Of a DNA stretch of 64,000 nucleotides, positions 3,873 to 62,353 are shown one piece after another; the stretch's first letter is position 1, and each line of letters begins with the position of its first letter. A model generated the notes under the pieces. It saw only the letters and a list, made by a program, of their open reading frames with translations. It did not search any database and was not told where the DNA came from. The stretch lies in contig NZ_JMCB01000004.1 of NCBI RefSeq assembly GCF_000737315.1, positions 62,001 through 126,000 on the forward strand. Direction: 5' to 3'. This DNA comes from Hyalangium minutum. Its GTDB lineage: Bacteria > Myxococcota > Myxococcia > Myxococcales > Myxococcaceae. Both the position numbers and the translations under genes were made by a program.

Positions 3873-4856
3873 ATGGCTGGAAATTCTCCCCCCAGGCGCC
3901 AGGCGCCCTTCATCCTCGGGCTCGTCCTGATCCTCGCGGCGCTGCCGCTGGGGTACTTCGTGTTTCTCCACCAGCCTCCGCCGCCTCCCGTGGCGCCTCC
4001 GCCGCCGCCACCGCCGCCCGCGGTCGTCGAGCAGAAGGCTCCGGAGAAGCCCCAGGAACTGACGATCACCGATGTGAAGGGTGACGTCGAGGTCCGGCGC
4101 GCGGACGGCACGTGGGAGCCGGTGAAGCCCGGCCGCAAGCTGCTCCCTTCAGAGGTGCTGCGCACCAAGGACGGCGGGACGGCGTCTCTCCGTGGCGACG
4201 CCGCGGACGTGACAGTGGAGCCCAGCTCCGAGATGTCGATGGAGGAGATCTCCGCCACCGCGACCCGGTTCCTGCTCGTCAACGGTATGGCGACCGCCGA
4301 GGTGCACTCGGGCGTCCGGCACACCTTGGTGATGCGCGCCACGGGCAGTGATGCCGTGGCGACCACCACCGCAGGCAAGTTCGCCATGAGCAACAACGGC
4401 GCGGGCACCGTCGCCGTCGGCACGCAGGCGGGTGAGGTCACCTTCCAGGGCAACGGGAAGATCGTCATCGTCCGCGCCGGCCAGCAGTCCGTGGTGCGGC
4501 CGGGCTCCAGCGGCCCCTCCGAGCCGGTGAACATTCCCTCCAGCCTGCTGCGCAAGGTGCAGTGGCCCTCGGCGCGGCAGAACAAGCGCGAGATCATCGT
4601 TCAGGGCGAGGCCGAGCCCGGCACCCGCCTGGAGATCGGCGGACAGACGTTCTCTCCGGGCCAGGACGGCGTCTTCACTCGCACCGTGTCCCTGAAGGAA
4701 GGGGAGAACGACGTGAAGCTCAAGGTCTCCTCCGTGGGCGGCAACCAGGAGGAGGCGAGCCAGAAGTTCCACGTCGACACCCAGGCTCCCAAGTTCAAGG
4801 TGAAGATCCCCTGGAATAACGCAGGGGGTCAGACTTCACCCAATCCGAATCCCTGA
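3873..4856 (+). CDS. Membrane-anchored FecR-domain protein with Pro-rich linker and C-terminal Ig-like domain
   Basis: N-terminal TM, poly-Pro linker, FecR-like GDVEVRR...LLPSEVLRTKDGGTASL...VTVEPSSEM, C-terminal SLKEGENDVKL. Confidence 0.8.
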   Translation: MAGNSPPRRQAPFILGLVLILAALPLGYFVFLHQPPPPPVAPPPPPPPPAVVEQKAPEKPQELTITDVKGDVEVRRADGTWEPVKPGRKLLPSEVLRTKDGGTASLRGDAADVTVEPSSEMSMEEISATATRFLLVNGMATAEVHSGVRHTLVMRATGSDAVATTTAGKFAMSNNGAGTVAVGTQAGEVTFQGNGKIVIVRAGQQSVVRPGSSGPSEPVNIPSSLLRKVQWPSARQNKREIIVQGEAEPGTRLEIGGQTFSPGQDGVFTRTVSLKEGENDVKLKVSSVGGNQEEASQKFHVDTQAPKFKVKIPWNNAGGQTSPNPNP

Positions 4857-4948
4857 AGCGCATGACGCCTCGGCGCTGCCAGCCGAGTTCCCGCCCTGCG
4901 AGATAGGATTTCTGGGATTCCGGAGGGGATTGTAGAGTCGGAGACAAT

Positions 4949-6886
4949 CTGAACCGGCTTGCTCCAGTCCTGCTCCTACTGCTCGCTCCGGCAGCGCTGG
5001 CGGATACGCTCGAAATCCTCGGGCCTTCCGAGGCCGTGCCGCCGGAGGGCTTTGCCGTGGCGCTCGTGCGGCGCGACGCGGTGGGGGCCCCTGCTTCTCT
5101 GGAGGCCCCGGTGCTGTCCGCCGAGGGCGCTGAGGTTCGCGCTGGAGCTCCGCAGCCGCCGCTGAGCACCTTCCTCGTCCAGCCCCAGCCGGGCGCTCGG
5201 ACCGTGGTGCTGCACGCTCGCTCCGGCTCGCTGCAGGCCGAAGCGCGGTATGCCATTGGCCCTCCGGTCTCCGCTGTCACCTTGGCGCTCGAGCCCGCCA
5301 CTCCCGTGAAGGGACGGGACAAGGAAGCCACCCTCACCGTGCGGCTGCTGCGGCCGGATGGGACGCCGGATGATTCCGGTGCGCCGCCCGTGGTGCGCTC
5401 GAACGTGGGCCGCGTGGAGGCGCTCTCGAGGACGGGGCCCGGCACGTACCGCGCCCGCTACGTGCTGCCCTCCACGAGCTACCCGGAGGTGGCCGTCCTC
5501 GTGGCGCTCTCGGCATGGCCGCACCCGCAGTCCATCTATGGCGCGTTCGGGAAGATGCTCGTCCCGCTGGCGGCGGCCGTGGATCTGCCGGGCGAGACGG
5601 AGCCGGATGCGCAGATCTCCATCACCATCGCCGGGAAGACGTATGGCCCGGCGCAGGCCGGCAGGGATGGGAGCTTCCAGCTCCCGGTGATCGTCCCTCC
5701 TGGGTTTCCGTTCGGACAGGGGCGCGTGGTGGACAGGGCGGGCAACGTCCGGCGCACGCCCATCGATCTCGGCGTGCCTCCCACGGATGGCCTGGCCTGC
5801 GTGCTCAACCCAACGCGGCTGCCCGCGGATGGGGCCTCGCGCGCGCGGCTGCTGTGCGCGGCGAGTGATCGGCTGGGCCGGCTCATGCCGGATGCCCGCG
5901 TCACCGCGAAGCCGCGCTACGGAACGCTGCGAGGGCCCCAGCGCGCCGAGGGCGGTCTGCTCGAGTGGATCTACACGGCGCCTCGGGAGCTCCCCACGGA
6001 GCCCGAGCGCATCCTGGCGGCGTGGCCCCAGGGCGGCTCGAACTCTCGGGAGGAGCTGACGCTCCAGCTGGTCCAGGGGCCGGTGGAGAAGGTCTCCGTG
6101 TCCATGGCCGAGCCGCTCGTGCACCACGGCGCCGAGGTGCCGCTGGCCGTCGAGGTGGAGGATGCCTTCGGCCGGCGCCGCCCGGGTGCCCAGGTGGTGC
6201 TCAGCGTTCCCGAGGGGACAGCCTCTCCGCTGAAGGAAGAGCGCCCGGGAACGTTCCGAGGCACGTGGACACTGCCCGCCGAGGGGCCGGGCGGGGAGGG
6301 CGTCGTACAGGTGCGCGCGTTTGGCCCCGTTGGCAGCGAGCCCGCTCGCCTCAGTGCGTGGGTCCGGGACGGAGAGCTGTTCGTAGGCGTGTCGGATCTG
6401 GCCGGCCTGCCCATCCCCGCGCAGCCGTTGAAGGTGGGCGGTGAGCAGCGCGAGACGGGAGCGGATGGCACGGTGAGCCTGGGCCTGCTGCGCCCCGGCC
6501 GGGTCGAGGTCGTCCACGGCATCTGGCCCGGGCTGCGCAAGGTGATTCATGTGCTGGGCTCCAGCGGCCCGGTGTATCCGCAGGACCTCCCGCTGGTGCC
6601 CGCTCCCGTGGAGAAGAAGGTGAGCATCGAGGCCTTCATCCCCGTGAACGTGCGGCTCCAGGTGGAGGGCTCTCGGGTGACGTACTGGGCGGAGGATCTC
6701 CGCGGGAACGTGCTCCCTCAGCGCCCCCTGCATGTGGCGCTCTCTTCCGGACGCCAGGAGGCGGTGGAGAAGCTCCGTGACGGGAAGATCCGGTTCACCG
6801 TCGCAGGCGCCCGGCCCGGGCGGGTCAGCGTGTCCGTGGCGGATGTGCAGACGGGGATGACGGCTGTGGCCGAGGTGAAGCCGTGA
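4949..6886 (+). CDS. Secreted multi-Ig-like (invasin/Big_1-type) protein; probable CTG start
   Basis: In-frame extension of ORF 5036-6886 gives signal peptide (M)NRLAPVLLLLLAPAALA-DT after GGAG; in-frame TAG at 4904. Repeated beta-sandwich motifs (GPGTYRARYVLP, GGLLEWIYTAP, PGTFRGTWTLP). Confidence 0.75.
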   Translation: MNRLAPVLLLLLAPAALADTLEILGPSEAVPPEGFAVALVRRDAVGAPASLEAPVLSAEGAEVRAGAPQPPLSTFLVQPQPGARTVVLHARSGSLQAEARYAIGPPVSAVTLALEPATPVKGRDKEATLTVRLLRPDGTPDDSGAPPVVRSNVGRVEALSRTGPGTYRARYVLPSTSYPEVAVLVALSAWPHPQSIYGAFGKMLVPLAAAVDLPGETEPDAQISITIAGKTYGPAQAGRDGSFQLPVIVPPGFPFGQGRVVDRAGNVRRTPIDLGVPPTDGLACVLNPTRLPADGASRARLLCAASDRLGRLMPDARVTAKPRYGTLRGPQRAEGGLLEWIYTAPRELPTEPERILAAWPQGGSNSREELTLQLVQGPVEKVSVSMAEPLVHHGAEVPLAVEVEDAFGRRRPGAQVVLSVPEGTASPLKEERPGTFRGTWTLPAEGPGGEGVVQVRAFGPVGSEPARLSAWVRDGELFVGVSDLAGLPIPAQPLKVGGEQRETGADGTVSLGLLRPGRVEVVHGIWPGLRKVIHVLGSSGPVYPQDLPLVPAPVEKKVSIEAFIPVNVRLQVEGSRVTYWAEDLRGNVLPQRPLHVALSSGRQEAVEKLRDGKIRFTVAGARPGRVSVSVADVQTGMTAVAEVKP

Positions 6887-50565: not shown

Positions 50566-50900
50566 GCCTCGGTGCCGTCCACGTGATCAGTCCCGGTCAT
50601 CCCGCGTGAGGCCAGGACGATGACCAGGAGGAGGGCCGTCATCGCAAAGCTGATGACGATGGCTGTCAGCACGAGCGCCTGAGGGACCGGATCCGTGTAG
50701 TGGGCGAGGTCCGGTGGGACGCCGTCCGCGAGGATGGGCTCCTTGTCGATGGCCAGGCCGCCGATGCTGAAGATGAAGAGGTTGACCGCGTAGGAGATGA
50801 GCGACAGTCCGACGACCAGCTGGAACGTGCGGGGCCGCAGCAGGAGCCAGACGCCCGAGCCGATCAAGATGCCGATCGCGAGTGCAAGTACAACTTCCAT
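50562..50900 (-). CDS. phaC: Pha/Mrp antiporter subunit C
   Basis: DPVPQALVLTAIVISFA. Confidence 0.95.
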   Translation of the reverse strand: MEVVLALAIGILIGSGVWLLLRPRTFQLVVGLSLISYAVNLFIFSIGGLAIDKEPILADGVPPDLAHYTDPVPQALVLTAIVISFAMTALLLVIVLASRGMTGTDHVDGTEA

Positions 50901-53800
50901 CAGTTACCTCCCGAGGCCCGGTGAGCGCGGATGGACTGGTGCGCGAGCGCCACGAGGATGAGCAACGTGGAGCCCAGCACCAGGCAGAACACGCCCAGGT
51001 CGAAGAACAGCGCGCTTCCGATGTGGAGCTCGCCCAGCACCGGCACGCTCAGATGGAAGGTGTGCGAGGTGAGCAGCGGGTACCCGACGGCGAGCGCCCC
51101 CGCGGCCGTGCCGAGGACAAACAGGAGCCCCATGCCTATCAGCGCGCGCGGCGCGAGGCGCACCCGCTGCTCGATCCACTCCGTCCCGGAGACGATGTAC
51201 TGGAGCAGGAAGCCCACCGACATCACCAGCCCTGCCACGAACCCGCCACCCGGCGCGTTGTGTCCACGCAGGAAGAAGAACGCCGCCACGACTCCCGAGA
51301 CGGGCAGGAGCAAGCGGATCAGCACCGCTGGGATTGTCAGGTAACCCGTCGCCGTGTCGCGCGTCTCTCGTGGAGTCACCAGATCTGTCTGCACGTCCTT
51401 CGGCTGCGCCTGCTGTTGAGGAGGGAGCTTCATCACCTCGGACGCGGGCCGGAAGCGCCGCAGGAGCGCGTAGACCGTGAGCGCGACGAGCGAGAGCACC
51501 ACCCCCTCCCCGAAGGTGTCGAACCCGCGGAAGTCCACCAGCATCACGTTCACCACGTTCCGCCCGCCTCCGCCGCTCAGTGAGTGCTCGAGGAAGAAGG
51601 AGGTGCGCTCGGGGAGCTCGCGCGTCATCACCGCATAGGCCAGGAGCGCCATCCCGCAGCCGCTGCTCACCGCGATGATGAAGTCGCGGATTCGCCGGCC
51701 TCTGGCGATCCGCCGGGTATGCGCATCGTACACGCCGCGAGCTGGCTCCCGCGCCGGGAGCCACCTGAGCCCGAGCAGGATGAGCAGCGTCGTCACCACC
51801 TCCACGATGAGCTGGGTGAGCGCCAGATCCGGAGCGGAGAACCAGATGAACGTGATGCAGCTCACCGCGCCCGCGGTCCCCAAGAGCATGAGCGAGGCAA
51901 GCCGGTGGAACTTGGCCTGCCAGGCGGCTCCCACCGCCGCGATGCCTCCGATGACCCACAGCGCGGTGAACACCGGAGAGAGCGGTACCAGCGGGCGATC
52001 TCCCTTGCCGATGCCACCCCACAGCGCCACGACGCCTACCAGCAGCGTGACCAGCACCATCGCCATCAACTGCCGCTGGAGCCCCGCGGTGAGGAGCCAG
52101 CGGCGGATCCACCGGCTCGCCGCGGTGAGCCACGCCAGCAGTGACGTGAAGAGCCGCGCGCCATCGAACCGCTCCACGAAGCGGCCTCCGAGGCCCACCC
52201 GTGCCGCCTTCAGCCGCTGGACCCCCCGGTACAACACCACGCCCCCCCCCAGCGCCAGCGCGCTCATGAGGAGCGGAGGCGTGAACCCATGCCAGAGCTT
52301 GAGGCTGTAGGGGGGGATCTGTCCGCCCACGACCGGCCGGGACGCGGCCTCGAGAATCGGCCCGATCGACACCGCGGGAGCGACGCCCACCACCAGGCAC
52401 AGGAGGACCAGGATCTCGACGGGGACGCGCATCCACTTGGGCGGCTCCTCCGGAACACGCGGGGTGTTCCGCTCGCTGGCGGGTCCGAAGAACACCTGCA
52501 CCGCGAACCGGAGCGAGTAGGCGACGCTCCCCATGCCCGCCAGGGTCGCCGCGATGGGCAGGCCCACCTGGACTGCGGGAATGGCGTCGATGAAGACGGT
52601 CTCGGCGAAGAACATCTCCTTCGACAGGAAGCCATTGAGCAGGGGAACACCCGCCATCGCCGCCGTGGCGACGAGCGCCAGCGTGCCGGTGATGGGCATC
52701 AGGCGGAAGAGCCCCGACAGCCGCCGGATGTCCCGCGTCCCCGTCTCATGATCGATGATGCCCACCGCCATGAACAGCGACGCCTTGAAGGCCGCGTGGT
52801 TCATGATGTGGAACACCGCCGCCACCGCCGCGAGCGGGCTGTTGAGCCCGAGCAGCAGCACCACCAGCCCCAGGTGCGAGATGGTGGAGTATGCGAGCAG
52901 CCCCTTCAGGTCGCGCTGGAACAGCGCCGCCCACGCGCCGAGCAGCAGCGTGACGAGCCCCGCGGAGCCAGTGAGCCAGAACCAGAGCTCCGTCCCAGAC
53001 AGCACCGGCCACAGCCGCGCCAGCAGGAACACGCCCAGCTTCACCATGGTCGCCGAGTGCAGATACGCCGACACCGGCGTGGGCGCCGCCATCGCGTTCG
53101 GGAGCCAGAAGTGGAAGGGGAACTGGGCGCTCTTGGTGAACGCGCCGATGAGGATGAGGCAGAGCGCCACCGGGTAGAGGGGATGGGACTGGACTGCCTG
53201 CGCGCTCCCGAGGACGGTGTCCAGTTCGTAGCTGCCGGCAATCTTCCCGAGCACCAGCAGCCCCGCGAGGAGGCTCAGGCCGCCCATACCGGTGACCGTG
53301 AGCGCCATCCGGGCCCCCCGCTGTGCGTCCTTCCGCTGGTTCCAGTAGCCAATGAGCAGGAACGAGAAGAGGGACGTCAGCTCCCAGAAGAAGGCAAGCT
53401 GCAGCAAATTTCCCGAGAGGGCCACGCCCAGCATCGCCCCCATGAAGGCCAGCAGGAAGGCGAAGAACCTGGGCACGGGATCCGACGGTGAGAGGTAGTA
53501 GCGCGCATACAGCATCACCAGCGCGCCGATGCCCAGCACGAGCACGCAGAAGGTCCACGAGAAGCCGTCGAGCCGCAGCACGAGGCTGAGCCCGAGCGAG
53601 GGGACCCACGCGAAGCGCTCGGCCCACACGCCCCCGTCCTGGACGCTCGGGAAGTGGAGCGCCACGCCCACGAGGCCCGCCAGCGCGGTGAGCCCCGCGA
53701 GCCCCGCTGCGCGGTTCCGGGCACTCGTGGGCAGCAATGCCGCGATGACACCGGCAACCCAGGGAATGACCAGGAGGGCAAGGAGGGGCATCCCTGGCAT
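50900..53800 (-). CDS. phaA: Pha/Mrp antiporter fused subunit A/B (alternative start 53791)
   Basis: FWELTS, TKSAQFPFHFWLPNAMAAPTPVSAYLHSATMVK, APDLALTQ, DFRGFDT, GHNAPGGGF. Confidence 0.95.
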   Translation of the reverse strand: MPGMPLLALLVIPWVAGVIAALLPTSARNRAAGLAGLTALAGLVGVALHFPSVQDGGVWAERFAWVPSLGLSLVLRLDGFSWTFCVLVLGIGALVMLYARYYLSPSDPVPRFFAFLLAFMGAMLGVALSGNLLQLAFFWELTSLFSFLLIGYWNQRKDAQRGARMALTVTGMGGLSLLAGLLVLGKIAGSYELDTVLGSAQAVQSHPLYPVALCLILIGAFTKSAQFPFHFWLPNAMAAPTPVSAYLHSATMVKLGVFLLARLWPVLSGTELWFWLTGSAGLVTLLLGAWAALFQRDLKGLLAYSTISHLGLVVLLLGLNSPLAAVAAVFHIMNHAAFKASLFMAVGIIDHETGTRDIRRLSGLFRLMPITGTLALVATAAMAGVPLLNGFLSKEMFFAETVFIDAIPAVQVGLPIAATLAGMGSVAYSLRFAVQVFFGPASERNTPRVPEEPPKWMRVPVEILVLLCLVVGVAPAVSIGPILEAASRPVVGGQIPPYSLKLWHGFTPPLLMSALALGGGVVLYRGVQRLKAARVGLGGRFVERFDGARLFTSLLAWLTAASRWIRRWLLTAGLQRQLMAMVLVTLLVGVVALWGGIGKGDRPLVPLSPVFTALWVIGGIAAVGAAWQAKFHRLASLMLLGTAGAVSCITFIWFSAPDLALTQLIVEVVTTLLILLGLRWLPAREPARGVYDAHTRRIARGRRIRDFIIAVSSGCGMALLAYAVMTRELPERTSFFLEHSLSGGGGRNVVNVMLVDFRGFDTFGEGVVLSLVALTVYALLRRFRPASEVMKLPPQQQAQPKDVQTDLVTPRETRDTATGYLTIPAVLIRLLLPVSGVVAAFFFLRGHNAPGGGFVAGLVMSVGFLLQYIVSGTEWIEQRVRLAPRALIGMGLLFVLGTAAGALAVGYPLLTSHTFHLSVPVLGELHIGSALFFDLGVFCLVLGSTLLILVALAHQSIRAHRASGGN

Positions 53801-53996
53801 TGCGCCAACCTGTTCGTTCCCACGGCAAGCAGTAATGAGAAGAAAGGCGGCGGAGGGCGTTGGGTAAGTAACGGATGGAGCGCCGTGGGAGGCCTTGGCG
53901 ACCAGCCCTTGAGGGTCTGTCCGAGGAGCACGCGGCACGACAGCCCTTGTGGCCCCTCCTCCTGCGCCCCACTTCTTTCCGTAGGAGAGACCTTCC

Positions 53997-54680
53997 ATGG
54001 TGCGTTTTCGAGATCGCTTCGAGGCGGGCCGTGTTCTCGCTGGGCGTCTGCACGCCTATGCCGGCCGCGGCGATGTGCTCGTGCTGGCGCTGCCACGTGG
54101 CGGCGTTCCCGTGGGCTTCGAGGTCGCGCGGAGGCTCGGTGCGCCTCTGGACGTGTTCGTGGTGCGCAAGCTCGGCACGCCGGGCCACGAGGAGCTGGCC
54201 ATGGGGGCCATCGCCACGGGGGGCGTCCGGGTCCTCAACGAGGACGTCGTCGAGAGCCTCAACATCCCCGAGAGGGCCATCGCGCGCGCCACCGAGCGCG
54301 AGGAGCTGGAGCTGGCCCGGAGGGAGCGGCTCTTCCGGGGCAGCAGACCGCCGCCCCGCATCGAGGGCCAGACGGTGATTCTCGTGGATGACGGGCTGGC
54401 CACCGGCTCCACCATGCGGGCTGGGCTCATGGCGCTGCGCCAGCGGGCGCCCGCTCGCCTCGTGGCCGCCGTCCCCGTGGGCGCCCCCGAGACATGTGCG
54501 GAACTCCAGGAGCTTGCAGACGAGGTGATCTGCGCCATCACGCCCGAGCCCTTCTTCGCGGTGGGCCAGTGGTACGGGGACTTCATGCAGACCTCCGACG
54601 AAGAGGTGTACGAACTGCTGGAGCGCGCGGCGCACGAGCATGAGGAGCGAGGGGCGGGGGCCTCTCCAGAAGCCCCTTGA
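53997..54680 (+). CDS. Phosphoribosyltransferase-family protein
   Basis: FRDRFEAG, LPRGGVPV, VRKLGTPGHEELAMGAI, ILVDDGLATG. Confidence 0.92.
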   Translation: MVRFRDRFEAGRVLAGRLHAYAGRGDVLVLALPRGGVPVGFEVARRLGAPLDVFVVRKLGTPGHEELAMGAIATGGVRVLNEDVVESLNIPERAIARATEREELELARRERLFRGSRPPPRIEGQTVILVDDGLATGSTMRAGLMALRQRAPARLVAAVPVGAPETCAELQELADEVICAITPEPFFAVGQWYGDFMQTSDEEVYELLERAAHEHEERGAGASPEAP

Positions 54681-55458: not shown

Positions 55459-55552
55459 TGGCAAAATGCCTGGGTGGGTGTGGCACGTTGCCACGGTCTC
55501 TCGTGCCTTGAGGTGGAGTCACGTGGGCGGTCACGCAGGTTCGTAAGTTGCT
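55459..55552 (+). promoter_or_regulatory. Tandem palindromic enhancer + sigma54 promoter, copy 1 (HK-EBP operon)
   Basis: TGGCAAAATGCCT 55459, TGGCACGTTGCCA 55481, 44 nt, AGGTTCGTAAGTTGCT 55537-55552. Confidence 0.7.
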
Positions 55553-55594: not shown

Positions 55595-57715
55595 ATGCGC
55601 CATCCTCTGGTCCCCATCCTCCTGCTCTGTGCCGCGCTCGCCGCTGTGGGAGGAGGCGTGCTCATGGTCCTCCAGCGCAGCCGCGCCGAGCTGGTGCAGC
55701 AGTTTGCCCGCGACCGTCAGGCCCAGCTCGATGAGGCGGCTCGGGGTGTGGCCGAGGCACTGGAGGACGTCAGCGAGGATCTCCTCTTCGCCGGAGAGCT
55801 CCTCTCCCAACCCGGAACCTCCGAAGATCATCGGCGCGAGCTGAGGGCCCTGTTGGAGGTCATCGGTCAGTACAAGACCATTGCCTCCTATGACGCGGCC
55901 GGCATCGAGCAGCTCCGGCTGGTGGATCGGCGTGCCGACCCCCTGGTCGTCCAGGGAAAGTTCTTCCCCGCCCTCTCGGAGACTGCGCTCCGGGCGCTTG
56001 AGCGGCCCCCAGGGGACATCACCAGCTCTCCGCCTCTGGCCGTCGGCGCGGAGGGGGGCTGGCTGCGCATCCTCGCCACCGCGATCCCCAGCGAGGAAGG
56101 CCAGCCTCGAGGTGCTGTCGCCGTCCTGGTGGACACGCAGTCCCTCTTCGCTCCGCTCAAGATCGTCACCTCGGATCCCGAGGCACGTCTGCTGCTCATC
56201 GGCGCGCACGGACGGCCCAGCCCTGCCAGTGATGCAGGGCTCGCTGACTGGTACCGGCGGCTGGAGACAGAGCAGGGGCTCGTCCCCACGTACGCCGAGC
56301 TGGCCTCGAAGATGAAGAGTGGCGAGCGCGGCACGCTGATGATCAGCGAGCAAGAAGCGGAACGGCTGGGCCTGGGAAGGGCCGAGGCCGTCGCCGCCTT
56401 CACCGCCATGCAGCTCAAGGGCGGCAGCCACTGGTCCGCCGCCACCCTGGTCTCCACCCATACACTGCGCTCCCACGAGCGGGGGCTCATCTTCCGTCTG
56501 TCGCTGGCGGCCCTCCTGGTGACGCTGTTCCTGGTGGCGTTCGGGATCTACGTCTTCGTGGCCCAGCGCCGCGCTGTAGCCCTGCGCGAGAGCCGCCGGC
56601 ATGCGGATCGGCTCGCGCACCTGCACGACAAGACCCAGAAGATCCTCGACAACATCCCCACTGGGGTGCTGGCCCTGACCGCCGAAGGACGCATCAGCGC
56701 TGTGAACCAGGCCCTGCGCTCCCGGATGCCCTCCCGTGTCGTCGGCATCTCCCTGGCCGAGGCCTTCCCCCATGCGCCCGAGCCGGTGATGAGCCGGATG
56801 CAGGGGCTCGTGGAGGCCGCCACCCGTGAGACCCGTGTGCGCAGCCTCTTGGGAGAACCGCTGGCCCTCTTCGGCGAGGAAGGCCAGTACAGCATCCACG
56901 CCGTGCCGCTGGAGGCCCGCGAGCCCGAGGTGCGCACGCTCCTCGTCGTCGAGGATCTCAGCAACCTCCGCGCCCTGGAGACCCAGCTCCTGCGCGCCGA
57001 GAAGTTCGCCACCGTGGGCGTACTCGCCGCGGGCATTGCTCACGAGATCGGCACGCCCCTGGGCGTGGTCCGAGGCCGCGCGGAGTATGTCCTCGGCAAG
57101 CTGGGCTCAGGCCATCCTCAGGCAGCCGGTGTGGGCGTCATCATCGAGCAAATCGATCATGTGAGCCGGACCATCCGCCAGCTGCTCGACTTCTCGCGGC
57201 TCCAGCCCGCGGCGGTGCGTCCGGTGGCGCTCGGGCCGCTGCTGCGCGACGTGAGCGAGCTGCTCCGCCTGGAGGCCGAGCGGCGTCAGGTCCGCCTCGA
57301 GTGGGAGCTCCCAGAGGGAGTGCCCGCGATCGCCGCTGATCCCGATCAGATCCAGCAGGTGCTCGTGAACCTGGCGCTCAATGCGTGTGATGCGTGCAGT
57401 GCCGGAGGCCGTGTCCGCCTGAAGGCCGCGGCGCCGGATGCGTCCTCCTCGAGCGCCTGGGGGCTCGTGCCGGTCACCGTCGAGGACGATGGGTGCGGAA
57501 TTCCGCCGGAGAGTCTCAACCAGGTGTTTGATCCCTTCTTCACGACGAAGAAGCGAGGGCAGGGAACCGGGCTCGGCTTGACGGTGGTCGCGCACGTCGT
57601 CCGCAACCATGGTGGGCGGGTGGAACTGGAGAGCAAGCCCGGGCGTGGCACGTGTGTCACCGTGCTCTGGCCCGCGGCGGGGCCCGCCGTGACAGAGGAG
57701 CAGCATGGCATCTAA
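55595..57715 (+). CDS. Membrane sensor histidine kinase (periplasmic Cache-like, PAS, HisKA, HATPase)
   Basis: Two TMs; AHEIGTPLG; NLALNA; DDGCGI; FFTTK; GTGLGL. Confidence 0.93.
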   Translation: MRHPLVPILLLCAALAAVGGGVLMVLQRSRAELVQQFARDRQAQLDEAARGVAEALEDVSEDLLFAGELLSQPGTSEDHRRELRALLEVIGQYKTIASYDAAGIEQLRLVDRRADPLVVQGKFFPALSETALRALERPPGDITSSPPLAVGAEGGWLRILATAIPSEEGQPRGAVAVLVDTQSLFAPLKIVTSDPEARLLLIGAHGRPSPASDAGLADWYRRLETEQGLVPTYAELASKMKSGERGTLMISEQEAERLGLGRAEAVAAFTAMQLKGGSHWSAATLVSTHTLRSHERGLIFRLSLAALLVTLFLVAFGIYVFVAQRRAVALRESRRHADRLAHLHDKTQKILDNIPTGVLALTAEGRISAVNQALRSRMPSRVVGISLAEAFPHAPEPVMSRMQGLVEAATRETRVRSLLGEPLALFGEEGQYSIHAVPLEAREPEVRTLLVVEDLSNLRALETQLLRAEKFATVGVLAAGIAHEIGTPLGVVRGRAEYVLGKLGSGHPQAAGVGVIIEQIDHVSRTIRQLLDFSRLQPAAVRPVALGPLLRDVSELLRLEAERRQVRLEWELPEGVPAIAADPDQIQQVLVNLALNACDACSAGGRVRLKAAAPDASSSSAWGLVPVTVEDDGCGIPPESLNQVFDPFFTTKKRGQGTGLGLTVVAHVVRNHGGRVELESKPGRGTCVTVLWPAAGPAVTEEQHGI

Positions 57716-59078
57716 GGAACGCATCCTGGTCGTCGACGACCACGTGGAGATGGGGCGGATGCTTCAGGATCCCCTCACGGACGAGGGGTATGAAGTGGAG
57801 CTCGCCACGGGAGGCTCGGAGGCCATCCGGCTCGTGCGTGCCCGCCCGTTCGACGCGGTCCTGAGCGATCTGCGCATGGAGCAGGTGGACGGCTTCGACG
57901 TGCTGGCCGCGGTGCGCGCCATGGACCCCGAGGTGCCCGTGCTGCTGATGACGGCCTTCGGGAACGTCGAGAGCGCGGTGGAGGCGATGCGGCGGGGCGC
58001 CTGGCACTACTTCACCAAGCCCTTTCGGCTGGAGGAGGTGCTCATCTACCTGCGCCGGGCCCTGGACGAGCGGCGGCTGCGCGCGGAGAACCGGGTGCTG
58101 CGCAAGGCCGCGGGGCCGGGCGGACTCGGGGCGCTGGTGGGCCGGAGCGCCGCCATGCGCAGCCTGTACGAGATGATCGAGCCCGTGGCCCACTCGGGTG
58201 CACCCGTGCTGCTCCGGGGCGAGAGCGGCAGCGGCAAGGAGCTGGTGGCGCGGGCGCTGCACTCGGAGGGGCCTCGGGCCGCCGAGCCCTTCGTGGCCGT
58301 CAACTGCACCGCTCTGCCGCACGCACTGCTGGAGAGCGAGCTGTTCGGCCACGTGAAGGGCGCCTTCACCGGGGCCACGACGCCCCGGCGGGGGCTCTTC
58401 GTCGAGGCGGACAAGGGCACGCTCTTCCTGGACGAGATCGGCGACATGCCCTCCGAGCTCCAGGCCAAGCTGCTGCGGGTGCTGGAGGACGGCGAGGTGC
58501 GCGCGGTGGGCGCGGATTCCAGCCGCAAGGTGGAGGTGCGCATCGTCGCGGCCACCCACCAGGACCTGGAGATGCGGGTCCGCGAGGGCCGCTTCCGGGC
58601 GGATCTCTTCTACCGCCTCAACGTCGTCACCCTGCGGATTCCGCCCCTGCGCGAGCGGCGCGAGGACATTCCGCTGCTCGTGGAGCACTTCGTCTCGCGG
58701 GCCCGTGCGAGGAACCCCCGCTCCAAGGTGACGGCGCTGTCGCCCGAGGTGGTCTCCGCGCTGGGCGCCATGCCGTGGCCGGGCAATGTGCGCGAGCTGG
58801 AGAACCTGGTCGAGCGGCTGGTGGTGCTCATTCCCCGGGAGATGGTGGAGGTGGGCGATCTCCGGCTTCACGCACCGGCGGTGAGTCCCGAAGCCCACCC
58901 GCTCGCCCTGGCCCAGGAGGGGGTGTGGCCCCTGCGCCAGCTCGAGGGCGAGTACATCTCCTGGGTGGTGGCCCACTGTGGGGGCAACAAGACGCGGGCG
59001 GCGGAGCTGCTCGGCATCGATGTCTCCACCATCCACCGCCGCGAGCGGGAGAGGGGTTCTGGCAATCCGCCACGGTGA
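57705..59078 (+). CDS. sigma54-dependent response regulator (REC-AAA+-Fis HTH enhancer-binding protein)
   Basis: GESGSGKE, ELFGHVKGAFTGA, LFLDEIG, WPGNVRELEN, GNKTRAAELLGI. Confidence 0.96.
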   Translation: MASKERILVVDDHVEMGRMLQDPLTDEGYEVELATGGSEAIRLVRARPFDAVLSDLRMEQVDGFDVLAAVRAMDPEVPVLLMTAFGNVESAVEAMRRGAWHYFTKPFRLEEVLIYLRRALDERRLRAENRVLRKAAGPGGLGALVGRSAAMRSLYEMIEPVAHSGAPVLLRGESGSGKELVARALHSEGPRAAEPFVAVNCTALPHALLESELFGHVKGAFTGATTPRRGLFVEADKGTLFLDEIGDMPSELQAKLLRVLEDGEVRAVGADSSRKVEVRIVAATHQDLEMRVREGRFRADLFYRLNVVTLRIPPLRERREDIPLLVEHFVSRARARNPRSKVTALSPEVVSALGAMPWPGNVRELENLVERLVVLIPREMVEVGDLRLHAPAVSPEAHPLALAQEGVWPLRQLEGEYISWVVAHCGGNKTRAAELLGIDVSTIHRRERERGSGNPPR

Positions 59079-59154
59079 GGGTGGCGGGATACCAGGGTGG
59101 ACGGTGGGAGGAGGGGGACTCCCGAGGGAGGAGGGCTCGGGCACGGACGTTGCT
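59060..59154 (+). promoter_or_regulatory. Tandem palindromic enhancer + sigma54 promoter, copy 2 (pal operon); overlaps the EBP 3' end
   Basis: TGGCAATCCGCCA 59060, TGGCGGGATACCA 59082, 45 nt, GGGCACGGACGTTGCT 59139-59154. Confidence 0.78.
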
Positions 59155-59166
59155 TCAACGAGGGGC

Positions 59167-59694
59167 ATGCGCTCATACCTTCTTCCCCTCGTCCTGCTCG
59201 CGATTGGCGCGAGCGCCTGTGCCACGAAGACCGCGGCGACCACCTCCACGGAGGGCGTCTCCTCGGTGGACACCTCGCCGCGTCCCGGCCCGGTGAAGCC
59301 CGCTCCGGCGCCCGCGCCGGTGGCCGAGCTGTCACCGCTGGACTTCGGCCCCATCTACTACGAGCTGGACTCGGCGACCCTGCGGGCGGACTCGCGGGAG
59401 ATGCTCGAGCGGGCCGCGGAGGCCCTGCGGAAGCGTCCCGAGGCGCGCGTGACGATCTCCGGGCACACCTGTGAGCTGGGCACCACCGAGTACAACCTGG
59501 CGCTGGGCCAGCGGCGGGCCGCCTCCGCTCGGGACTACATGGTGAAGCTCGGCGTGGAGCCGGCGCGCATCGGTCTCGTGTCCTATGGCGAGGAGCGTCC
59601 GGCCGAGCAGGGCACGGGCGAGAGTGTCTGGTCCAAGAACCGCCGCAGCGAGTTCACGGTCACTGTGGCCCACGCCCGGGCGGGTACGCCGTAG
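59167..59694 (+). CDS. pal: Pal/OmpA-family peptidoglycan-associated lipoprotein
   Basis: Lipobox ASA-C; ISGHTCELGTTEYNLALGQRRA, SYGEERP, KNRRSEF. Confidence 0.88.
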   Translation: MRSYLLPLVLLAIGASACATKTAATTSTEGVSSVDTSPRPGPVKPAPAPAPVAELSPLDFGPIYYELDSATLRADSREMLERAAEALRKRPEARVTISGHTCELGTTEYNLALGQRRAASARDYMVKLGVEPARIGLVSYGEERPAEQGTGESVWSKNRRSEFTVTVAHARAGTP

Positions 59695-59696
59695 CC

Positions 59697-60074
59697 GTGG
59701 GGGCTCGACAGGCCGGTCAGGCGCTGCTGTTGGGCGCCGACGAGTCACTGGCCGCGCTCCTGGCGGATGTTCTCTCGGAGGTGGGCATCTCCCTGCACGT
59801 GGGGGAAGGGCCTCCCGCTCGTCCGGATCTCGTGCTCGTCCAGATCGAGCGCGGCGAGAGCCTCCTGAGCGCGCTGCAGGGCGCCCGGGATGGGACGTAC
59901 CCGGCACCGGTCTTCGTCCTGCTGCCGTTCGCGGACGATCGAATGATGCAGCGCGCGCTGCGGCTGGGCGCTCGGGGGTGCTTCGCGCTCGGGCAGCCGC
60001 TCGAAGTGCTGCGGCGGATGGTGCTCTCGGTGCTCCCCGCCGTGGGTCCGCTCGCGCCCAAGAGGATTCGATGA
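59697..60074 (+). CDS. Stand-alone degenerate receiver-like protein
   Basis: Receiver topology (RPDLVLVQIE, PVFVLL, ALRLGARGCF), but Gln at the phospho-Asp position and no conserved Lys. Confidence 0.6.
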   Translation: MGARQAGQALLLGADESLAALLADVLSEVGISLHVGEGPPARPDLVLVQIERGESLLSALQGARDGTYPAPVFVLLPFADDRMMQRALRLGARGCFALGQPLEVLRRMVLSVLPAVGPLAPKRIR

Positions 60075-60535
60075 GTGATTCCGAGCAGGTGACAGGACCT
60101 CAGTTGGGGCAAGAGGAGACTCTCCTCTTCAACGAACAGGGCGTGCTCGTCACGAGCGAGCGCGTGGTCGCCTCCGGCCGCACGTGGCGAGTGGGCGAGC
60201 TGGTCGGGGTGGGCTCCATTCGCCGCAGTCCGCGCGTCCTCCCCTGGCTGGTGATCCTGGTGCTGGGCGCGATCGTGGGGTTGCCGGTGCTCAGCTCGCT
60301 CCTGGTCAGCCCCCACGCGCCGGGCAGCCTGAGCTACGACGTGGTGCTGGCGCTGGCGGGGACGGCCATCTTCGCCTCCATCGCTGCGCTCGTGGTGGTG
60401 GGAGACAGCTACTGGCTCGTGCTGCGCACGCGGCAGCGAGAAGGGCACGTTCTCCGCAGCCGGGACCCCCAGCTCATCTCGAAGCTGGTGACCGTGGTGG
60501 GCGAGGCCGCGGAGGCCGCGCGCCAGCGGCGCTGA
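60071..60535 (+). CDS. Small two-TM membrane protein (DUF6232-like)
   Basis: ATGA overlap; GVLVTSERVVASGRTWRVGEL, two TMs, SRDPQLISKLV. Confidence 0.7.
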   Translation: MSDSEQVTGPQLGQEETLLFNEQGVLVTSERVVASGRTWRVGELVGVGSIRRSPRVLPWLVILVLGAIVGLPVLSSLLVSPHAPGSLSYDVVLALAGTAIFASIAALVVVGDSYWLVLRTRQREGHVLRSRDPQLISKLVTVVGEAAEAARQRR

Positions 60536-60577: not shown

Positions 60578-61426
60578 TCACGGAACGGTGATCTCCGCCG
60601 TGCCCACCTTGCGGCCGGCGGAGATGGAGATCAGGGCGCGCCCAGGCCCCACCGCCGTGGCCTTGCCGGAGCGGGAGATCCGGACGACGGAGGCATTCGA
60701 GGTGAACCAGTGGACGGGCACGCCTTCCACGGGCTTCCCCCGGCTGTCACGCACCTTGGTCTGGAGCTGAAGCTCCTGGCCTCGCTTCAAGGTAGACGTG
60801 CCCGGGTCGATGGACACCTGCGAGAGCGCGGGCATGACGAGGACGGACAGCTCCTGCCGCAAGTCTCCCAAGGTGGCCGTGAGCACGGCGGTGCCTGGGG
60901 CCACGCCGACGACCTTCCCGGCCTCGATGCGCGCGATGTGCTCGTCGCTGCTGCTCCACTCGGGAGTGCCATGGCGGATGCGCTTGCCCCGCTCATCCAG
61001 CACCGTGGCGGTGAGCCGCTCGGGGCGTCCCACCTCGATGAAGCTCCCATTCCCCGCCTGAAGCACCAGCTTGCCGGGAATGGACACCACGAAGCTCAGG
61101 CTGGCCCGGGCCTTCCCGCCGGAGACGTGGATGGTGGCGCGCCCGGTGCTCCGCGCGGTGACCACCCCGTTCTCCACCGTGGCGACCTCTGGCGCGGAGC
61201 TGGACCAGCTCAGCCGGGGCTCCGCCAGCCGTCGTCCCTGGGCATCGTGCGCCATGGACTCCAGCCTGATGGCTTGGCCTCGCTCCCCCAGCAGGCGAAC
61301 CTCCGGCTCCACGAGCGTCAGCTGCTCGGGAACCGGATCGCACCCGATGAGCAGGGCGCTCGAGAGGAAGCACAGCAGGGGGCGGCGGAGCAGCGGGGGC
61401 ACGATCATTCCGAGGCGCATGGGCAT
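60578..61426 (-). CDS. Lipoprotein with three Big_2 Ig-like domains (start may be 61420 or 61408)
   Basis: Lipobox LIG-C; WSSSAPEVATV, WSSSDEHIARI, WFTSNASVVRI. Confidence 0.88.
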   Translation of the reverse strand: MPMRLGMIVPPLLRRPLLCFLSSALLIGCDPVPEQLTLVEPEVRLLGERGQAIRLESMAHDAQGRRLAEPRLSWSSSAPEVATVENGVVTARSTGRATIHVSGGKARASLSFVVSIPGKLVLQAGNGSFIEVGRPERLTATVLDERGKRIRHGTPEWSSSDEHIARIEAGKVVGVAPGTAVLTATLGDLRQELSVLVMPALSQVSIDPGTSTLKRGQELQLQTKVRDSRGKPVEGVPVHWFTSNASVVRISRSGKATAVGPGRALISISAGRKVGTAEITVP

Positions 61427-61440
61427 GCGGCGGCAGGGGG

Positions 61441-61722
61441 CTACTTGCGGCCCGTCTTCTTGGGGGGCGGGGGGGCAGGCCTCTCCGCGGCGAGCTTCAG
61501 CTCATCACGCTCCCGCGACACCTCCGTGAGGGTGTCTTCCAAATCCGCGACCTTGGCCTTCAAGGTCTTGTTCTCCGCGCGCAACACGCGCGACTCCGCG
61601 CGCAGCGAGTCGGTCTCCGAGCGCAGTGAGGTCGCCTCCGCGCGCACCTGCCTCAGCTCCTTGGAGGGACCACATGCCGAGAGCAGCCCTCCGGCTAGCA
61701 CTGCCATCACCCAGGTCTTCAT
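61441..61722 (-). CDS. Small coiled-coil lipoprotein, paralog 2
   Basis: MKTWV...LSA-CGPSKEL, heptad repeats, ERDELKLAA, tail PPPPKKTGRK. Confidence 0.85.
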   Translation of the reverse strand: MKTWVMAVLAGGLLSACGPSKELRQVRAEATSLRSETDSLRAESRVLRAENKTLKAKVADLEDTLTEVSRERDELKLAAERPAPPPPKKTGRK

Positions 61723-61790
61723 CAACGCCAAGCTCCTCGAGGGCTCGCGCCAGCGGCCTTCCGCTGGAGGCGGCCCACCCGCGAGTGCAG

Positions 61791-61884
61791 AGCAAGCCGT
61801 GTGCCCACAGCCCAGCTGCTCTGAGTCGCCCGGCTCTGGGCGCGGAACCGTGGCAAGACGCCAGACCTCCCTGGCGTGTTGCCA
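61791..61884 (-). promoter_or_regulatory. Tandem palindromic enhancer + sigma54 promoter, copy 3
   Basis: Minus strand: TGGCAACACGCCA, TGGCGTCTTGCCA (21 bp apart), 45 nt, GGGCACACGGCTTGCT. Confidence 0.8.
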
Positions 61885-61912
61885 TGCCTCTGTGGCACGC
61901 CCGGGGCCTGCG

Positions 61913-62188
61913 CTACTTCTTGGCCGTGGTGCCTGGCTTCTTCGGGGCCGCCGGAGCGGGAGCCGGTGTGGCCGCTGGGGCGGGCTTCGCCGCGGCGAGC
62001 TTCAGCTGGTCGCGCTCCTGGCGCACCTTCTGGAAATTCCCCTCCAGCTCGGCGAGCTGGGTCTTCAGCTTCGTGTTCTCCTGGCGGAGGGCATCCGCGT
62101 CTCCCTTGGCCCGCTCCAGCTCTTTGGAAGGTCCGCACGCCACCAGGGGAGCGAGCGCCAGCACCAGGGCTGCCATCCACGCCTTCAT
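61913..62188 (-). CDS. Small coiled-coil lipoprotein, paralog 1
   Basis: MKAWM...LVA-CGPSKEL, heptad repeats, ERDQLKLAA, tail APKKPGTTAKK; GGAGG RBS. Confidence 0.87.
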   Translation of the reverse strand: MKAWMAALVLALAPLVACGPSKELERAKGDADALRQENTKLKTQLAELEGNFQKVRQERDQLKLAAAKPAPAATPAPAPAAPKKPGTTAKK

Positions 62189-62258
62189 TCGTCTTCAACC
62201 TCCTGACAGGTCCGAGCCGGAGTCCGTCTCCGGGCTTGGCCTGAGCGGGAGGAGCCAA

Positions 62259-62353
62259 AGCAAGACGCGTTCCTCCCGTGCGTCCCGAGGGGCGCCCTGC
62301 GTGAGCTCAAGAAAACCGTGGCAGGAAGCCATGGCCACCCAGGTGTGTTGCCA
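62259..62353 (-). promoter_or_regulatory. Tandem palindromic enhancer + sigma54 promoter, copy 4
   Basis: Minus strand: TGGCAACACACCT, TGGCTTCCTGCCA (22 bp apart), 45 nt, AGGAACGCGTCTTGCT. Confidence 0.75.

Follow-up and report, generated by a model that had tools for sequence, protein, structure and literature searches.

Two paralogous leucine-zipper lipoproteins in a predicted sigma54-type regulon of Hyalangium minutum, candidate analogues of the lipoprotein Lpp

We analysed a stretch of 64,000 nucleotides (nt) from the myxobacterium Hyalangium minutum (contig NZ_JMCB01000004.1 of assembly GCF_000737315.1, positions 62,001 to 126,000 of the forward strand). This whole stretch is called the window, and positions are counted within it unless another locus is named. 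It carries two genes, here called A and B, for short lipoproteins that an earlier reading of the DNA letters (the original prediction) had likened to Lpp, the lipoprotein that links the outer membrane (OM) of Escherichia coli to peptidoglycan:

61913..62188, minus strand: gene B, a lipoprotein of 91 amino acids (aa), lipobox LVAC with Cys18
61441..61722, minus strand: gene A, a lipoprotein of 93 aa from an ATG, lipobox LSAC with Cys17

The public gene call for A (GCA_000737315.1, JMCB01000004.1) uses the same ATG and gives 93 aa; the alternative start offered by the open reading frame (ORF) lister, a TTG at 61731, would give 96 aa. Both mature proteins begin with CGPSKEL and continue into a rod that ends in ERDELKLAA (A) or ERDQLKLAA (B) and is followed by a Pro/Ala spacer. 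In A this spacer is short (PAPPPP) and leads to ...KKTGRK, and in B it forms part of a 24-residue Pro/Ala-rich disordered tail ending in ...PKKPGTTAKK. The layout that had been described for two minus-strand ORFs, with lipobox and CGPSKEL, ERD(E/Q)LKLAA, Pro/Ala spacer and Lys-ended tail, was recovered in full. The two proteins align at 39% identity (BLASTP, E 6e-12) with one gap of 14 residues, i.e. two heptads, and on sequence grounds A and B are paralogs and real, conserved genes. Mature A and B carry Gly at the +2 and Leu at the +7 sorting position. In Myxococcus xanthus, Lys at +2 causes inner-membrane retention and Ala at +7 directs export to the matrix (PMC3222651), so both proteins lack the inner-membrane and matrix signals of that organism; we infer that they are OM lipoproteins.

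Database searches yielded a family of 28 A-type, 15 B-type and 14 C-type sequences that fall into three length classes, with six heptads in B, seven in C and eight in A. Word-indexed searches of 5.8 billion proteins returned 27 A-type and 13 B-type sequences, whose named sources are Hyalangium, Stigmatella and 'Myxococcaceae' metagenome-assembled genomes (MAGs). An exhaustive hidden Markov model (HMM) search of 1.84 billion cluster representatives gave 314 matches at E<=1e-3, mostly generic long coiled-coil proteins with only about a dozen short, basic-tailed lipoproteins among them, and a scan of a genome collection found only four loci. The C-type came to light in the HMM search and always ends in ...KK, mostly as GKKRKK. 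A further search located it in Myxococcus sp., Pseudomyxococcus hansupus and Pyxidicoccus (genes at L008 3984-4259 and L009 7024-7305; proteins P0044 and P0196-P0206), where it stands as a single gene flanked by a DOT1-like gene and a DUF4326 gene. None of the 53 aligned members reached the cut-off of any Pfam or NCBIfam model, and by this measure A, B and C form a previously undescribed, narrowly distributed family. One metagenome protein (P0050) follows the A-type pattern up to about residue 45, beyond which its sequence is Arg/Cys-rich and unrelated, probably through a frameshift or an assembly error.

AlphaFold2 monomer models built on family alignments show A as a single helix over residues 22-80 (59 aa, pLDDT >90) with a disordered tail at 81-93, and B as a helix over residues 22-67 (46 aa) followed by its disordered tail. 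The 'about six heptads' originally counted in both proteins therefore suit B (about six) and fall short for A (about eight). The 53-sequence family alignment shows no break in the heptad register. Leu fills the d positions almost without exception, with Val or Ala at the rod ends, and the a positions read, in order, L, A, T/V/A, V/A, N, V, L, R and A, with Asn51 and Arg72, both at a, invariant in all three types. Attractive g-e' pairs were counted at 7/8 sites in A, 4/6 in B and 6/7 in C, and repulsive pairs at none. The indels that separate the three types measure exactly 7 or 14 residues, as is expected of a length-tuned rod. Register, zipper core, g-e' pairs and heptad-sized indels indicate, at the level of sequence, a parallel, in-register homo-oligomer whose length would be under selection. 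Under the general coiled-coil rules, dimers are favoured by Leu at d combined with one buried Asn and a basic residue at a. With Leu at d and the invariant Asn and Arg at a, a leucine-zipper dimer is favoured over an Lpp-style trimer, and A and B are most likely homodimers of this kind. The best PDB matches in a sequence-profile search were likewise dimeric zippers (GCN4, MafB, BST2 and GABA-B); Foldseek returned no PDB match to the monomer model of A, a single helix giving little information. At 1.5 Å per residue the rods would measure about 8.8 nm in A and 6.8 nm in B, the shorter B rod being offset by the longer Pro/Ala spacer, and the A rod comes near the OM-to-peptidoglycan spacing of about 85 Å that is attributed to Lpp in E. 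coli (PMC12729407). Of the idea of tethers with different spacer lengths, the lengths are real and come in whole heptads, and the zipper core suggests a dimer more than an Lpp-like trimer.

Candidate regulatory elements precede both genes, and related ones stand on the opposite strand in the same neighbourhood:

62316..62353, minus strand: candidate upstream activator site of B, dyad TGGCAA-N4-CC-N2-GG-N8-GC-N4-TGCCA
62259..62274, minus strand: sigma54-type promoter of B, AGGAACgcgtcTTGCT, with correct GG/GC spacing and a predicted 5' untranslated region (5'UTR) of about 60 nt
62217..62233, minus strand: predicted 5'UTR hairpin of B, CCGGAG-acgga-CTCCGG, directly 5' of the Shine-Dalgarno sequence
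61848..61884, minus strand: candidate upstream activator site of A, dyad TGGCAAcacGCCAGggaggtCTGGCgtcTTGCCA
61791..61806, minus strand: candidate sigma54-type promoter of A, GGGCACacggcTTGCT, a consensus match with correct GG/GC spacing
61750..61767, minus strand: predicted 5'UTR hairpin of A, CCAGCGG-aagg-CCGCTGG, directly 5' of the Shine-Dalgarno sequence
59060..59154, plus strand: activator site (59060-59097) and sigma54 promoter GGGCACggacgTTGCT (59139-59154), 5' of the gene for a Pal-like lipoprotein
55459..55552, plus strand: fourth activator site (55459-55496) and weaker sigma54 promoter AGGTTCgtaagTTGCT (55537-55552), 5' of a kinase/activator operon

The dyad has the general form TGGCAA-N4-CC-N2-GG-N7-8-GC-N4-TGCCA and lies about 45 nt upstream of the promoter, those of A and B standing about 60 nt 5' of the start codons. 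Its half-pattern matches four times in the window against 0.78 expected by chance, and all four dyads precede genes of this neighbourhood (A, B, the Pal-like gene and the kinase/activator operon). The sigma54 promoter pattern alone, with six matches in the window against 4.6 expected, is not above chance, so the promoters are supported by position and conservation and not by the number of matches. The enhancer and promoter module is conserved in nine A/B promoters from six genomes, being found 5' of A/B genes in Stigmatella aurantiaca, H. versicolor and three MAGs, and the dyad core and the GG, A and TTGC of the promoter are invariant in all nine. The claim that A and B each have their own enhancer/sigma54 promoter is borne out in this window. 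In S. aurantiaca, 8 bp separate B from the A gene behind it, which lacks a separate promoter, so a promoter before A is specific to certain lineages. The same dyad/sigma54 module precedes the Pal-like gene in a second genome as well, and joint control of A, B, the Pal-like gene and the kinase/activator operon by one predicted enhancer/sigma54 module is, at the sequence level, well supported. The fourth dyad with its weak promoter suggests positive autoregulation of the two-component system.

The hairpin in the A and B leaders (6-7 bp) is kept in nine homologous leaders with compensatory changes at 4/10 predicted pairs, and it may serve to control mRNA stability or translation. For the Pal-like gene, the -12 element ends 13 nt before the ATG, so its mRNA is predicted to be leaderless or nearly so; a GAGGGG motif lies between the two (window 59139-59169), and the MAG ortholog shows the same tight spacing (L006 about 2660-2695). 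No sigma70 promoter or intrinsic terminator was found on the coding strand between 60400 and 62450. A wider regulon was also sought by scanning metagenomes with the enhancer-plus-promoter pattern, and was discarded because the two matches obtained were both chance occurrences inside unrelated sequence.

The genes around A and B are as follows:

60578..61426, minus strand: Big_2 lipoprotein of 282 aa with Ig-like domains, starting 14 nt past the stop of A
60071-60535, plus strand: DUF6232 protein with two transmembrane helices, 3' of the 125-aa ORF
59697-60074, plus strand: ORF of 125 aa without a family match, 3' of the Pal-like gene
59167..59694, plus strand: Pal-like OmpA-domain lipoprotein (PF00691, 78.3 bits)
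57705..59078, plus strand: NtrC-type response regulator and sigma54 activator with receiver, AAA+ Sigma54_activat (232 bits) and Fis helix-turn-helix (HTH_8) domains
55595..57715, plus strand: sensor histidine kinase with two transmembrane helices around a periplasmic domain of about 270 residues, then PAS, HisKA and HATPase domains

The NtrC-type protein is the presumed binder of the dyad sites. The original prediction had named the co-regulated partner as Pal; the module in front of it stands, and the protein itself is best called a Pal-like OmpA-family lipoprotein, since it scores 120.8 against the cut-off of 125.35 of the Pal equivalog model TIGR02802 and lies outside a tol-pal operon, flanked by the activator gene and a small ORF and not by tolB and ybgF. 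Stops and starts of the Pal-like gene, the 125-aa ORF and the DUF6232 gene overlap or adjoin. The latter two probably belong to the Pal-like operon and regulon, because their order is conserved in the MAG at L006 (66% and 49% identity, respectively). One MAG, other than the Archangiaceae MAG named below, has A at 3 kb from a cluster of kinase, activator, Pal-like, small-ORF and DUF6232 genes, in a different orientation and gene order. The Big_2 lipoprotein gene is probably co-transcribed with A, and S. aurantiaca and an Archangiaceae MAG likewise have the genes in the order B-A-Big2. In S. aurantiaca DW4/3-1 (L001 7255-11051) this group is followed by convergent traB (TSP_3 and OmpA domains) and traA (Myxo_TraA_N), and in the Archangiaceae MAG (L007 about 4640-4950) an OmpA-domain gene occupies the convergent position of traB; the adjacency may be a coincidence, or may reflect a link between tethering and OM exchange. 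Upstream of the two-component system, a fused Mrp/Mnh-type cation/proton antiporter subunit is encoded on the minus strand (50900-53998; Proton_antipo_M, MbhD, MbhE and MnhB domains).

The tails vary by type. Terminal Lys is present in 15/15 B-type and 14/14 C-type sequences, the latter ending in Lys-Lys, and all 39 aligned A and B sequences share a subterminal Lys (K89 in A, part of the motif [KR]-K-x-G). Neighbouring genes encode 2.0% Lys against 8.6% Arg, so the persistence of Lys in the tails does not follow from composition. A Hyalangium paralog (P0049 and P0192-P0194; L015 6001-6597) shares signal peptide and leucine-zipper stalk with A and B, but carries a GspC-like PDZ domain where they have the basic tail, which suggests that the C-terminus is the working end. 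The NCBI label of this paralog is 'type II secretion system protein GspC', and its gene does not lie in a type II secretion system operon. Neither its locus nor the C-type loci showed an enhancer, a sigma54 promoter or envelope-related neighbours. In Dickeya a C-terminal Lys is required and suffices for the Lpp box, which tolerates many substitutions and is loosely defined (PMC12274547); the RK and KK endings of A and B fit it. A terminal Lys is also found in more than 20% of the periplasmic proteins and lipoproteins of E. coli (PMC12274547), so this motif by itself is weak evidence. Coxiella LimB27 and Legionella Lpg1810 are linked through internal or penultimate Lys residues (PMC12729407).

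The reading we prefer, with somewhat less than even confidence, is that A and B are OM-anchored struts, induced by the two-component system, that tether the OM to peptidoglycan or space it from it. An envelope signal would pass from the histidine kinase to the NtrC-type sigma54 activator, which would raise its own synthesis and induce A, B, the Big_2 lipoprotein and the Pal paralog. A and B would zip into parallel rods reaching 7-9 nm into the periplasm from the N-terminal lipid anchor, and the flexible Pro/Ala spacer and Lys-rich tail would engage peptidoglycan, the regulon as a whole forming an inducible module that adds or re-spaces OM-peptidoglycan contacts. Within this reading a covalent link holds about half of the weight. 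It is plausible for B and C, where an L,D-transpeptidase encoded at another locus would most likely join the terminal Lys of the tail to meso-diaminopimelic acid (meso-DAP). Two putative L,D-transpeptidases are known in M. xanthus, and Lpp from E. coli, when produced there, apparently couples OM to peptidoglycan only with its terminal Lys (bioRxiv 10.1101/2025.05.15.654258), which makes covalent capture credible. The fullest form of the proposal is a convergent covalent Lpp-type tether outside the Gammaproteobacteria, in which Lys-ended zippers of six, seven or eight heptads are linked by myxobacterial L,D-transpeptidases and, in Hyalangium and Stigmatella, induced together with a Pal paralog by a two-component/sigma54 system; this we put forward only tentatively and consider unlikely as a whole.

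Several observations weigh against an Lpp-type tether. On profile evidence A and B are not homologous to Lpp. The Lpp/OprI model NF040598 gave 19.4 bits for A and 23.1 bits for B against a cut-off of 43, and PRK15396 gave 13.9 against 108. PF04728 was missing from the matches of B at E<=1 and from the 25 Pfam families commonest across the 53 members, and Lpp was not among the best 60 of 150 PDB sequences matched at E<=10 in the profile search. An hhalign comparison with E. coli Lpp covered the signal peptide but no more than the first half of the coil. Homology to Lpp was accordingly rejected, the Pfam, NCBIfam, PDB profile and hhalign results all being sub-threshold and driven by the signal peptide or the coiled coil. 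Other sub-threshold matches were to the leucine-zipper families CENP-F_leu_zip, HALZ, bZIP_1 and DivIC and to the SA0632 family lipoprotein model NF047408 (38.7 and 32.6 bits against 70). The anchor, the rod of about 7-9 nm and the basic, Lys-ended C-terminus of the Lpp-like reading hold, homology does not, and a trimer-type coil is less likely than a dimer.

The tails of the A-type add to this. Only 21/28 end in Lys and the remaining seven, from several sublineages, end in Arg (GRR), so the conservation of the terminal Lys, whose absence the original prediction had named as a refutation, is complete in B and C and incomplete in A, where this residue is, as far as the alignment goes, not strictly required. 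Since A accepts a terminal Arg, its binding would be at least partly electrostatic or would use the invariant subterminal Lys. Among distant short lipoproteins of this layout, K and R are about equally frequent as the last residue, and a generic polybasic tail may therefore suffice. A regular-expression search of six-frame translations of the window and of loci L001-L011 did not find the catalytic motif of YkuD L,D-transpeptidases, SxGC[IVLFM][RH]. Control by sigma54 implies conditional expression, unlike the constitutive abundance of Lpp. Finally, no M. xanthus member turned up in the family searches; confined to a few Archangiaceae and Myxococcaceae genera and absent from that species, the family is by its observed distribution an accessory one.

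In a different role, the coiled coil would be only a spacer, possibly surface-exposed, that presents the polybasic tail to lipopolysaccharide, phospholipid head groups, exopolysaccharide or the Big_2 lipoprotein. We regard this as possible, though rather unlikely. It would account for the K or R endings of the A-type and of the distant look-alikes and for the Big_2 lipoprotein gene 14-28 nt after A in three genomes; the exchange of the tail for a PDZ domain would make the stalk a general-purpose presenter, and the operon adjoins traB and traA in Stigmatella, with an OmpA-domain gene at the traB position in one MAG. However, the joint regulation with an OmpA-domain lipoprotein that binds peptidoglycan speaks for the cell wall, the rod lengths fit the distance from OM to peptidoglycan and not the full width of the periplasm, terminal Lys is strict in B and C despite a strong genomic bias towards Arg, and the +7 Ala signal for sorting to the matrix is lacking.

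Two further roles were weighed. A periplasmic coiled-coil regulator or scaffold of cell-wall enzymes or division, of the EnvC, DivIC/FtsB or LpoB kind, is improbable in our view. Sub-threshold matches to the coiled coils of DivIC (28/53 members), FtsL, PcsB and MreC and the automatic naming of some homologs as 'EnvC' by JGI speak for it, but all these matches lie below cut-off and reflect generic coiled-coil composition, and what is conserved is anchor, rod length and basic tail, without an enzyme-binding domain. More improbable still is an origin as spanin-like or phage-derived lysis or membrane-fusion lipoproteins, to which B shows weak PHROG matches (Rz-like spanins, E 1e-4 and 5e-4) and a weak NCBIfam match (LysB). 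Rz proteins are inner-membrane proteins with a transmembrane helix, whereas A and B are lipobox lipoproteins; the genes are chromosomal, conserved across genera and part of a two-component/sigma54 regulon with a Pal-like gene, and no phage genes lie nearby. This origin was rejected, given weak PHROG matches that reflect coiled-coil composition and the lack of a phage context.

Lpp is the textbook covalent link between OM and cell wall, and the attachment of the OM in other diderms is under active study. The example at present is that of the myxobacteria, whose fluid OM is loosely tethered, is shed, passes between cells and divides independently. Homologs of Lpp (PF04728) are restricted to four orders of Gammaproteobacteria (bioRxiv 10.1101/2021.05.31.446380), no myxobacterial case appears in a 2025 review of tethering by L,D-transpeptidases (PMC12729407), and M. 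xanthus is stated to lack Lpp-like proteins (bioRxiv 10.1101/2025.05.15.654258). If the proposed function is correct, a native, regulated Lpp-like family in relatives of M. xanthus would offer a direct genetic handle on OM tethering. The effects of induced tethering on vesiculation, OM exchange and division, the use of variants of six, seven and eight heptads as periplasmic rulers, and the covalency of the link would then become testable. With a covalent tether the cell could adjust, as needed, the tightness and the distance at which an otherwise loosely held OM is kept. Should A and B bind something else, what remains would be a lipoprotein family specific to this lineage and not yet characterised, together with a sigma54 regulon that is clearly defined. 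The architecture, the heptad-quantised lengths and the inducible regulon make for a timely hypothesis, against which must be set that the function is wholly inferred and the family narrow.

Among known systems, the rods resemble parallel zippers of the GCN4/bZIP type, which likewise have Leu at each d, a single buried Asn at a and salt bridges between g and e'; in profile searches of PDB and Pfam, A and B match dimers of this type best. This likeness would be one of convergent coiled-coil sequence, A and B being periplasmic and lipid-anchored and having no DNA-binding region. With Pal and other OmpA-domain lipoproteins, which reside in the OM, have a Pro/Ala-rich hinge and bind peptidoglycan, A and B share a regulon through one such gene. 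Unlike Pal they have no OmpA domain, and non-covalent binding would rest on a basic tail of 6-10 residues. The Lys-Lys ends of B (...GTTAKK) and C (...KKRKK) recall the OutB and Lpp boxes of Dickeya dadantii (VRTTKK and VRTYKK; PMC12274547). OutB is a gammaproteobacterial inner-membrane scaffold of the type II secretion system, and the likeness spans only 2-4 residues.

Lineage-specific, non-Lpp tethers are known in Coxiella burnetii (LimB27) and Legionella (Lpg1810), where a non-terminal Lys is joined to meso-DAP (Lys21; C-terminal Lys-Thr; PMC12729407). They provide a precedent for the use of the invariant subterminal Lys in A and B, and differ in having unrelated sequences and folds, a short tether of about 35 Å and an attachment shown by mass spectrometry. 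The abundant verrucomicrobial lipoprotein WP_009060351, in which the C-terminal Lys is also conserved and which was detected in the peptidoglycan fraction, has been proposed as a non-homologous analogue of Lpp beyond the Gammaproteobacteria (PMC10260701). It belongs to another family, is constitutively and highly expressed and has some biochemical support, whereas A and B are sequence-based candidates.

Lpp of E. coli itself (PF04728, NF040598) is, as A and B are predicted to be, a small OM lipoprotein made almost entirely of one parallel coiled coil, a rod of about 8 nm, with a basic C-terminus ending in R-K or K-K and a Pal-type partner. It differs in being an alanine-zipper trimer with a coil of about 56 residues, where A and B have a leucine zipper whose a positions include an invariant Asn and an invariant Arg, and are probably dimers; it also has no extra Pro/Ala spacer, and its massive, constitutive expression contrasts with the sigma54-inducible A and B. 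The replacement of the terminal Lys by Arg in a quarter of the A-type is again unlike Lpp and, like the oligomeric state, weighs against the tether; the covalent linkage of A and B stays a candidate. Because the sequence test for Lpp failed while anchor, rod length, Lys terminus and Pal-type partner match, we class A and B as a candidate analogue of Lpp and not as its homolog.

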